A DNA stretch of 63,936 nucleotides, the filler included, from Octopus bimaculoides (Eukaryota): the NCBI RefSeq assembly GCF_001194135.2. It is 15 parts of 10 records of this genome, joined end to end, with 100 filler letters (N's around TTAATTAATTAA, not from the genome) between each part and the next. Parts side by side here need not be neighbours in the genome. Positions count along the whole stretch, not along the records: positions 46,866 to 49,268 come from NW_026380777.1; 14 more parts are not named here. One strand, written 5' to 3'. Below are positions 46,766-49,368 of the stretch, piece by piece. The stretch's first letter is position 1, and each line of letters begins with the position of its first letter. The position numbers and the translations under genes were made by a program. Under the pieces are notes generated by a model that did not search any database, was not told the origin of the DNA, and saw only the letters and a list, made by a program, of their open reading frames with translations.

Positions 46766-47289
46766 NNNNNNNNNNNNNNNNNNNNNNNNNNNNNNNNNNN
46801 NNNNNNNNNTTAATTAATTAANNNNNNNNNNNNNNNNNNNNNNNNNNNNNNNNNNNNNNNNNNNNTATATATAATTAAAAATATGACGCAGAAGAATGAC
46901 AAGGGGAAAAACAGGAAATTCACATGCTAGATGTGGGACATATTCTTTTTTTGTCAGTTATCTTTAAAAAAATCATGACAGTTTCACATCTTTAACTATA
47001 ATATTGTTTATTTTGGTGGTGCCAACAGCAAAAGATTGCAGGGAATAATGAGGGAACATAGAGACAGTGACAAAAATAAACTCGGCACAGGTAGTCGGTA
47101 TGAATGTAAATATTCAAGCAAAATAAAGGTCATACAGCTCTGAGGCATACATACATACACAAACACACACACATATACACACATATACACACATATACAT
47201 ACATACATACATACATACATACATACGGGACAGAGAGGCAGGCAAAGCGCTGCAATGTAATAACCGATGCAGACCCTGTGGAATCAGTA

Positions 47290-47865
47290 TCGAAAATAGA
47301 CCGGATATAGTAATCTGGGACAGAGAAGAGAAACTGTGTACAGTAGTAGAAATCAGCTGTCCTGCGGATGTTAATATCACACTAAAGATTAGAGAAAAAG
47401 AGAACAACTACGCCGAGCTATTGAGAAATTTGCAGATACTCCATCCAGACTACAAGTTCAGATTCATACCCGTGATTGTTGGGGCATTGGGATATGTAAC
47501 GAACTGCCTCAACAAAAACCTGGAAAAATTAGGGTTCTCAAAACCTGAAAGAAAAAGGCTGATTAGAAGACTACAGATTCAAGCCATCAATGGAACTGTA
47601 AAGATATGTAAAACTTTCCAAAAATTTAGCGCATAAATACACATGCATGCATCTAGACATGAAAATATATACATAAAAACGCATCCATAAAACAAACATA
47701 CAAATCTGCGCAAACACTAACACCAAATACTGCACACACACACACATATGCACAAATACCTAGATGATGTTGATAAAAGTTCCAATAAAGGAGCGTTGAA
47801 TCTATGTTAGAGTCCGGCTCTTTCTCTATTGACAAGAAATACAGAAATGAAACTGATTGATAACA
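47290..47865 (+). mobile_element. REL-endonuclease non-LTR retrotransposon, copy 2
   Basis: Reads NRPDIVIWDREEKLCTVVEISCPADVNITLKIREKENNYAELLRNLQILHPDYKFRFIPVIVGALG...KICKTFQKFSA*; the 3' end runs into (ACAT)n. Confidence 0.85.
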
Positions 47866-48105
47866 TACATACATACATAGGTGATAATATAAATATATAT
47901 ATGCAGAGAAATTAACGTATAGGCTGTATGTTAATACATTGACAGTGTATTTATATTGGCAGTAATTAATATAAGGGATGAAACATTAGCATTTATAGGC
48001 AGATTTGGCCATGGAGAAGAAAATCTCTTCCCATGACTACACCTGAACTTGTCCAGGATGAAACAAAAGTCTCTGTTACAGAAACAGTTTCTAGTCAGAT
48101 TTTAC

Positions 48106-48192
48106 CTCCATTGTTCTGAACTCCACTTTCCATCCGGATTTCTCATCAGGAAGCTTCAGTTTTATGCTGTGCCAGTTACTTGCTATAATGGT
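48106..48192 (-). CDS. GCLC: Exon of a divergent glutamate-cysteine ligase catalytic subunit-like gene (active-site GW.VEFR segment)
   Basis: Acceptor ttctgtttCAG and donor GTAAAA; 87 nt, phase 0-0. Encodes TIIASNWHSIKLKLPDEKSGWKVEFRTME versus recalled human [31 protein letters not shown] (14 identities, 2-aa gap). Orthologue versus paralogue status is not determined. Confidence 0.9.
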
Positions 48193-48944
48193 CTGAAACA
48201 GAATGTTAAACAACCTCAGTCATGAATATGGAATTACTTATGAGTATGTAACTTTTACAAGAAGAAAGCAATTATTGAAGTTTACACTGTGCAAAAACTT
48301 TTTGAAAACTTCAATTTTAAAATTTAACTGCATATTCAATTAGAAAAGTAATTTTATTTCACTTCAAAACCGTCAGCACTTTTTAATACATTGTGAAATA
48401 GCTGACATTTTTTAACACCTTTCTTTTCTCTTGTTGTCCATCTCTTCTTTGTTTACTTTATTACAATTAGTTTTTCTTTATTCTCATAACTTTTTCTATC
48501 ATTCTCATCTTTCTGGTTCTTCAACATTCCCCACCACCACCCACACCCTGTTATTGCATTTAATACTTTTTGGCTTTCTCTACATATTCTTTTACTTTCA
48601 CTTTCATTCCTTTCAACACTGTCTGCTTGCCTGTCTGTCTGTTAGTCAATCGGTCTGTCAATTTGTCTGTCTGTCTGTTAGTCAGTTGGTCTATCAATCT
48701 GTCTCTCTCTCTCTTTCTCTCTCTGGAAGAACTCAGTAACATTCAGACCTAAATAAGAATGGGTTCCACTAATTTTAAAACACCAAGGGTACAACATACA
48801 ACACAACAGCACATCTACGACTCGATCAAGCATTGAAGGCCCAAGGGAGGAAGAAATGTGTTGATCATAGAATTAATTTCTAGCTTAATGGTTCCCACAG
48901 ATTTATTTGTAAATTATTAAAAGTGTTCGATAGATATATTTTAC

Positions 48945-49057
48945 CTGAATGTGATCAGTATCATTCATAATGTCTTGATCGATTTTTTCTTTGTATAAAG
49001 TGATGGGGTCTCTAACAAGAAGTTGGGCAACAAATTTGGACATCATTTCATCAACAC
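48945..49057 (-). CDS. GCLC: Preceding exon of the same GCLC-like gene
   Basis: Acceptor aattaatCAG and donor GTAAAA; 113 nt, phase 1-0. Encodes (G)VDEMMSKFVAQLLVRDPITLYKEKIDQDIMNDTDHIQ versus recalled human [38 protein letters not shown] (17/38, no gaps). Splices in frame to 48192 across a 752-nt intron. Confidence 0.9.
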
Positions 49058-49368
49058 CTGATTAATTAACAAATATTTTAATTCATTAAATTGATAGCAT
49101 TGTCATTAAATAGATTGCTGTATAGGTTAGTAAACAGATAGATACACAGCTAAATAGACAGAGAGTTGAGAGGAAGGTAGATAGAATAAAACAGCCACTT
49201 GAAGCTTGAAACTCATATCAAAGTAAATCACATTAAGCATTATTATTATGAAGTTTCAAATAAAAATTNNNNNNNNNNNNNNNNNNNNNNNNNNNNNNNN
49301 NNNNNNNNNNNNTTAATTAATTAANNNNNNNNNNNNNNNNNNNNNNNNNNNNNNNNNNNNNNNNNNNN

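Follow-up and report, generated by a model that had tools for sequence, protein, structure and literature searches.

Gene structure and coding potential

The window, that is, the whole stretch of 63,936 nt of Octopus bimaculoides DNA that was analysed, contains on the minus strand of one 2.4-kb piece (record NW_026380777.1) two exons of a gene resembling that for the catalytic subunit of glutamate-cysteine ligase (GCLC), together with parts of the adjoining introns and some further elements (Table 1). Spliced in frame 2, exons A and B encode a stop-free peptide of 66 aa (VDEMMSKFVAQLLVRDPITLYKEKIDQDIMNDTDHIQ followed by TIIASNWHSIKLKLPDEKSGWKVEFRTME), and the remaining two frames of the joined exons hold many stops. 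The product of exon A, (G)VDEMMSKFVAQLLVRDPITLYKEKIDQDIMNDTDHIQ, in which the first 2 nt are the end of a split Gly codon, corresponds to residues 362-399 of primate GCLC and 402-438 of the yeast enzyme; that of exon B, TIIASNWHSIKLKLPDEKSGWKVEFRTME, is the remodelled active-site motif. Both acceptors are pyrimidine-rich. The peptide matched the Pfam family GCS (PF03074; E=2.7e-19; score 70.1 bits, cut-off 25; profile positions 131-199) and yeast GCL (3ig5; residues 405-475, E=5e-8), and its likeness to the GCS family is not a matter of chance. As open reading frames the exons reach just 40-47 aa, which is why they are missing from the ORF track.

Table 1. Features of the GCLC-like locus, in positions of the window.
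Feature	Position	Strand	Description
Intron 5' of exon A, 3' end only	49058..49268	(-)	ends in acceptor ttaattaatcAG; cut at piece edge
Exon A	49057..48945	(-)	113 nt; acceptor ttaattaatcAG before, donor GTaaaa after
Intron between exons A and B	48193..48944	(-)	752 nt, phase 0, GT..AG
Exon B	48192..48106	(-)	87 nt; acceptor ttctgtttcAG before, donor GTaaaa after; phase 0 at both ends
Intron 3' of exon B, 5' part	46866..48105	(-)	begins GTaaaa; cut at piece edge
Open frame in the intron after exon B	47127..47636	(+)	antisense to the gene; ends ...RPDIVIWDREEK...FIPVIVGALGYV...LQIQAINGTVKICKTFQKFSA*
Microsatellite-like tracts	47146..47227 and 48650..48720		(TGTA)n/(TG)n and (ACAG)n-type
Rejected match	47748..47789	(+)	MHKYLDDVDKSSNK

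The piece covers 66 of ~606 codons (~11% of the CDS) and 2 of ~16 exons, and exons A and B are consecutive internal exons, about numbers 10 and 11 of 16. A tblastn search with 13 family proteins revealed no further GCLC-like exon in the 2.4-kb piece, including the intron part that follows exon B. A plus-strand segment with a weak likeness to the paralogue segment IHKYLDHVDYDSSK (E=0.23), on the strand opposite to the gene and behind a (CA)n tract, was dismissed as a chance match. The antisense open frame has copies, 33-47% identical at the protein level, in introns of O. sinensis, O. bimaculoides, and O. vulgaris loci, and is therefore a dispersed repeat; it had no significant Pfam match, and presumably resembles the C-terminal domain of a retrotransposon ORF. 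The microsatellite-like tracts match simple repeats in related loci and carry no homology signal.

Intron positions were compared using one primate and one Haliotis locus. The intron between exons A and B sits at the canonical GCLC position between DHFE and NIQ, and in the GCLC of the primate Nycticebus coucang (locus L004), with introns there and between PME and VQ, both positions and phases match those of the window. The upstream exon of Nycticebus also has 113 nt and the same split Gly codon; the second has 93 nt against 87 nt in the window, exon B showing a two-codon deletion before GW relative to the canonical exon. Because intron positions are held in common with canonical GCLC, the gene is a DNA-level duplicate and not a retrogene. 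The homologous intron spans 2.2-6 kb at the Octopus loci, against 1.1 kb in the primate and only ~950 nt in Argonauta. Moreover, the acceptor context ttaattaatcag is common to exon A and the orthologous exon of O. sinensis paralogue A (locus L001), which has the acceptor context gttaattaatcag immediately upstream. The gene had been predicted from the DNA alone as two minus-strand exons with canonical splice sites joining in frame, and this structure held, with all four borders AG/GT and no stop, and its coordinates and peptide proved correct; the intron positions given for GCLC at that time were likewise correct, the Nycticebus gene having both at the same places.

Paralogue family and phylogeny

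When 1.84 billion cluster representatives were searched exhaustively with HMMER, the top match of the window peptide was P0001, an O. vulgaris GCLC-like protein (92% identity), and the rest reached 50% or less. The exhaustive search was needed, as a word-indexed search with the 66-aa peptide found nothing despite this 92% relative; no exact match was present in the 5.8-billion-sequence protein collection. Searches with P0001, and then with a paralogue profile, returned 13 proteins of the paralogue kind (806-1239 bits), from O. vulgaris, O. sinensis, O. bimaculoides, and Argonauta hians only, separated by a gap from the ordinary GCLCs, all of which scored 707 bits or less. Their groups were designated A (P0001, P0151), B (P0152, P0273), C (P0153, P0159), D (P0154, P0156), E (P0155), and F (P0160, P0163), besides the Argonauta protein (P0157). 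Accessions include CAI9741797.1 (P0001) and QHX41528.1 (P0152) of O. vulgaris, XP_014772723.1 (P0273) of O. bimaculoides, and GAB1605628.1 (P0157) of Argonauta hians, and O. sinensis members include P0151, P0153, and P0160.

Three O. sinensis copies lie in tandem on one strand, in the order E-A-C (CM016886.1, 15.87-16.00 Mb), and the canonical GCLC of this species, P0162 (649 aa), lies on a separate chromosome (a 165-Mb record). In O. bimaculoides, D adjoins a convergent copy; Argonauta has one copy, with no second within 10 kb. The family, tandem at least in part, numbers six or more paralogue groups in Octopus besides the one Argonauta gene, GCLC being apparently single-copy in the other animals that surfaced in our searches. 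The protein collection searched yielded no GCLC whatsoever from squid, cuttlefish, or Nautilus, and "octopod-only" is used for a family seen so far only in octopods, in a collection without any decapodiform GCLC match.

Several public gene models of the family look faulty. The models P0154, P0155, and P0156 lack or misread the exon bearing Glu96 and Glu103, which for P0154 is present in O. vulgaris DNA (locus L003, 33513..33623). Furthermore, LQLTDFENAALVVFM is duplicated in P0158 and P0161, P0001 has a foreign N-terminus, and the last exon of P0154 is identical to that of paralogue C. These observations, and those on tandem arrangement, were made at loci L001 (1..5193), L002 (67746..74308), and L003.

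In a neighbour-joining tree of 546 ungapped full-length columns, the paralogues formed a long-stemmed clade (100% bootstrap) whose sister was the O. sinensis canonical GCLC (70%), with Argonauta branching outside the Octopus copies (89%). On the 66 aa, the window peptide fell inside the paralogue clade with 100% bootstrap; its position within the clade was weak, with A and D at 54%. Exon A is identical to O. sinensis paralogue A at 35 of 37 aa and to primate GCLC at 16 of 37. Compared with the fetched Octopus and Argonauta loci, to none of which the window is identical, nucleotide identity is 80-91% in the exons and right beside them and disappears further into the introns. Over the two exons, dS between the window and Octopus A, C, and D is 0.5-0.85 and is saturated against Argonauta, as compared with ~0.1 between A and D and 0.13 between the O. 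vulgaris and O. bimaculoides orthologues of D. By these distances, the window gene would be either a further paralogue or a gene from an octopod beyond the O. vulgaris, O. sinensis, and O. bimaculoides group, and it falls within the post-Argonauta radiation.

The original prediction had spoken of a hidden gene. In the wider sense it is not hidden, since close relatives bear the NCBI label "glutamate--cysteine ligase catalytic subunit-like" in four species (O. vulgaris, O. sinensis, O. bimaculoides, and Argonauta hians), and QHX41528.1 of O. vulgaris was deposited directly, not only through automated annotation; the family is already in public annotation, and the window adds one member to what is a multi-copy and partly tandem family, and so is no single odd copy. 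In the literature searched for octopus or cephalopod GCLC paralogues and for QHX41528, no paper treating the family and no enzymatic data for any member were found.

Remodelled motif and ligand-contact residues

The canonical motif was compared in ten sequences (yeast, five molluscs including the octopus canonical GCLC, three arthropod-type sequences, and one primate). In all of them the motif at 436-453 ends (T/S)(M/L)RFKPP and 468-472 reads R-V-E-F-R (yeast numbering), in agreement with the near-invariance from yeast to human that had been stated for it. The window departs from this pattern, with HIQTIIASNWHSIKLKLP...GWKVEFR in place of ...GWRVEFR; 9 of the 16 invariant positions in 436-453 are altered, plus Arg468. 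All of the substitutions first described from the DNA are present (F-E>I-Q, QST>IAS, QT>HS, RF>KL, P>L, and WR>WK, N-W, K, and VEFR being unchanged).

In most paralogues the two segments are H-I-Q-(T/A/S)-(I/V)-I-(G/A)-S-N-W-H-(S/T)-(L/I)-K-L-K-L-P and K-(I/V)-E-F-R, groups D, E, and F deviating at some positions. The clade signature (H-I-Q, I-I-[GA]-S-N-W-H, K-L-K-L-P, and W-K-x-E-F-R) is complete in the window, where Ala442 occurs otherwise only in Argonauta, and Val469 also in F and in canonical GCLC. The canonical sequences of yeast and nine metazoans have 175 invariant columns in common; in the comparison with five full-length paralogues (A, two B, C, and Argonauta), 105 of these were unaltered in all five and 43 were altered in every one. 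Changes are enriched in 436-453 (9/16 vs 34/159 elsewhere, Fisher p=0.004), and a second altered patch, at 194-205, lies beyond the window.

Residue roles were taken from the yeast contact table reproduced in PMC5613772, in yeast numbering. In the yeast enzyme, ScGcs, Glu50, Glu52, Glu96, Glu103, and Glu470 contact Mg2+, Trp445 the cysteine carboxylate, Lys451 the ADP beta-phosphate, Arg472 the glutamate gamma-carboxylate, and Tyr362 the glutamate alpha-carboxylate (PMC5613772). The window keeps Trp445, Lys451, Glu470, and Arg472, which are all the known ligand contacts in its stretch. In the family, D49, E50, E52, E96, E103, Q268, K451, E470, and R472 are kept in every model covering the position, R313 is kept in all but F, and W445 is lost in E and F. 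An AlphaFold model of paralogue A (pLDDT 82, pTM 0.88) gave a TM score of 0.85 to yeast GCL 3ig5.

Other positions near the ligands have changed. Tyr362 is Phe in most paralogue copies, and Cys266 is replaced by Ser and Thr105 by Lys in the relatives, among which the 258-262 loop also differs; like Glu50, Glu52, Glu96, Glu103, Gln268, and Arg313, Tyr362 belongs to exons beyond the piece. In the yeast complex with glutathione, Met262 and Tyr362 reportedly move to admit the tripeptide; a literature search on these two residues found nothing relevant, and we make no use of this as evidence. Arg449 and Arg468 are Lys in nearly all copies; in a model of the Leishmania enzyme (PMC5613772), the corresponding Arg481 and Arg494 contact the ADP ribose. 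The codon at 49034..49036 of the window (TTT, Phe) aligns with human His370, where the disease variant H370L has been reported. In each of the nine octopod relatives the residue is Tyr, one base away (TAT to TTT), so that Phe at this position is a state unique to the window copy.

In human numbering, all the paralogues have Ser or Val in place of Cys249 and Pro, Arg, or Leu in place of Cys553, which is invariant in metazoans; a deletion has removed the segment with Cys501, and the last 25-35 residues of the C-terminus are lacking. Cys553 is implicated in the disulfide link to GCLM, and the loss of these cysteines and of the tail suggests a loss of redox or GCLM control.

Selective constraint

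Between the window and paralogue A, the two exons differ by 15 synonymous changes in 36.7 sites and 7 nonsynonymous changes in 161.3 sites (dN/dS 0.076; binomial p=5e-7 against neutrality), and the exons are under purifying selection. The prediction that the copy is no decayed pseudogene is borne out by this nonsynonymous deficit, and by the conservation of the motif from Octopus to Argonauta, in the sense that it is not long decayed. Over longer stretches, omega was 0.25 for the O. vulgaris and O. bimaculoides orthologues of D and ~0.28 for paralogue pairs A-D; the family is constrained, yet more loosely than would be expected of a core enzyme.

Discussion

Our preferred reading, to which we give a probability of about 0.55, is that the window gene belongs to a family of active, constrained, and probably ATP-dependent ligases with a changed substrate preference or regulation. 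The sister placement to the octopus canonical GCLC points to a probable DNA-level duplication of that gene, and the shared introns fit such an origin. Fast divergence on the stem would then have been followed by multiplication to at least six Octopus groups, three of them in tandem in O. sinensis. The protein would still be an ATP- and Mg2+-dependent carboxylate-amine ligase, in which an acyl phosphate would be formed on a glutamate-like acid and then passed to an amine, as in GCL; ligase chemistry is probably retained because no Mg2+ ligand has been lost, nor have Lys451 and Arg472, which bind phosphate and carboxylate. In this context, the acyl-phosphate chemistry looks preserved, and the amino-acid pockets and regulatory features look altered. 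The surroundings of the amino-acid site would be reshaped by Tyr362Phe, by the changes at 437-447 flanking Trp445, by the 258-262 loop, and by Cys266Ser. Near the nucleotide ribose, two Arg have become Lys. Elsewhere, Thr105 has become Lys, and the protein lacks Cys553 and the C-terminal tail. The likely outcome would be an altered preference for acceptor or donor, an altered response to glutathione feedback and GCLM, or both.

The main rival explanation, rather unlikely in our judgement, is that the paralogues are conserved proteins, catalytically dead or very weak, that act in binding, regulation, or structure, for example by binding glutamate or a nucleotide or by competing for GCLM. Since invariant positions are altered, including the equivalent of His370, activity could indeed be low or lost: all five full-length paralogues compared depart from 43 of the 175 universally invariant positions, Tyr362Phe removes a hydrogen bond to the glutamate carboxylate, Thr105Lys, Arg449Lys, and Arg468Lys add to the change at the His370 equivalent, and the omega measured over longer stretches, 0.25-0.28, indicates a relaxed constraint by the standard of a core enzyme. 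Moreover, with Trp445 gone in E and F, and Arg313 also in F, part of the family, at least, is drifting from catalysis. However, the five Mg2+-binding glutamates, Lys451, Arg472, and Gln268 are kept wherever covered, in all groups and in Argonauta, which is not expected of a non-catalytic protein, and most of the changes are conservative (R>K, Y>F, F>I/L, and T>S).

That the window copy is itself a fragment, or a pseudogene of the tandem family that was disabled not long ago, with only two exons looking intact, strikes us as improbable. Just two exons are visible in the piece, its peptide lacks an exact match in the 5.8-billion-sequence collection, several gene models of the cluster are broken or chimeric, and no other copy has Phe at the His370 position; against this, both exons keep their frame, length, and all four splice sites, the excess of synonymous changes (15 vs 7 nonsynonymous; omega 0.076, p=5e-7) shows constraint over most of the divergence, and all four ligand-contact residues of the stretch are kept. 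As for the single housekeeping GCLC of a fast-evolving cephalopod, nothing but membership of the GCLC family favours it, and its probability is close to nil. This reading is refuted for Octopus, where the canonical P0162, with an intact motif and on a different chromosome in O. sinensis, coexists with the paralogues; it is 72% identical to Haliotis GCLC, 67% to primate GCLC, and 54% to the paralogues of its own genome, and the window peptide agrees with it at 32/66 positions vs 61/66 for paralogue A. Nor are the substitutions a molluscan trait, as Haliotis and three bivalves do not have them. Octopuses keep the housekeeping glutathione enzyme separately and the window gene is not that enzyme, so that the diverged paralogue of the original prediction stands.

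A bolder and more doubtful possibility is that octopods evolved GCLC-derived ligases relieved of bulk glutathione synthesis, which in particular tissues would yield some other gamma-glutamyl (or related) amide or peptide, or else gamma-glutamylcysteine free of GSH feedback and GCLM control. The thiol or gamma-glutamyl-amide pathway suggested in the original prediction is likewise hypothetical. Such a gamma-glutamyl-amide or unregulated ligase, if real, would represent an undescribed branch of animal thiol or gamma-glutamyl metabolism, and the family is a candidate for new gamma-glutamyl chemistry or for an unregulated supply of glutathione precursor in cephalopods. Furthermore, the octopod copies can be regarded as a natural experiment on the role of "invariant" GCLC residues, with the metal site kept, the substrate surroundings rewritten, and regulatory features lost. 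The practical gain is a defined and testable set of genes.

Comparison with known systems

The octopod GCLC-like proteins have in common with the window gene both the two-codon deletion and the altered motif (H-I-Q-x-(I/V)-I-(G/A)-S-N-W-H..K-L-K-L-P..W-K-x-E-F-R). Exon borders were checked at the A, C, D, and Argonauta loci and agree with those of the window, which is nonetheless identical to none of these proteins. With canonical GCLC and yeast Gsh1 (EC 6.3.2.2, PF03074, 3ig5), the paralogues share the fold, as modelled for paralogue A, the intron positions, the Mg2+ ligands, and Lys451, Arg472, and Trp445. Unlike canonical GCLC, from which they differ at nearly half of all residues within one genome (54% identity), they have 9/16 invariant positions of 436-453 changed, the replacements Tyr362Phe, Cys266Ser, Thr105Lys, Arg449Lys, and Arg468Lys, a remodelled 194-205 segment, a replaced Cys553, and no C-terminal tail. 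In brief, the second-best structural match to the paralogue A model was given by the YbdK-type carboxylate-amine ligases (PDB 1r8g; E=2e-7), which have weak GCL activity and are not known to have a settled physiological substrate. With 11% identity, about half the length, and a bacterial origin, they provide an analogy for the GCL fold in another job and are not a relative.
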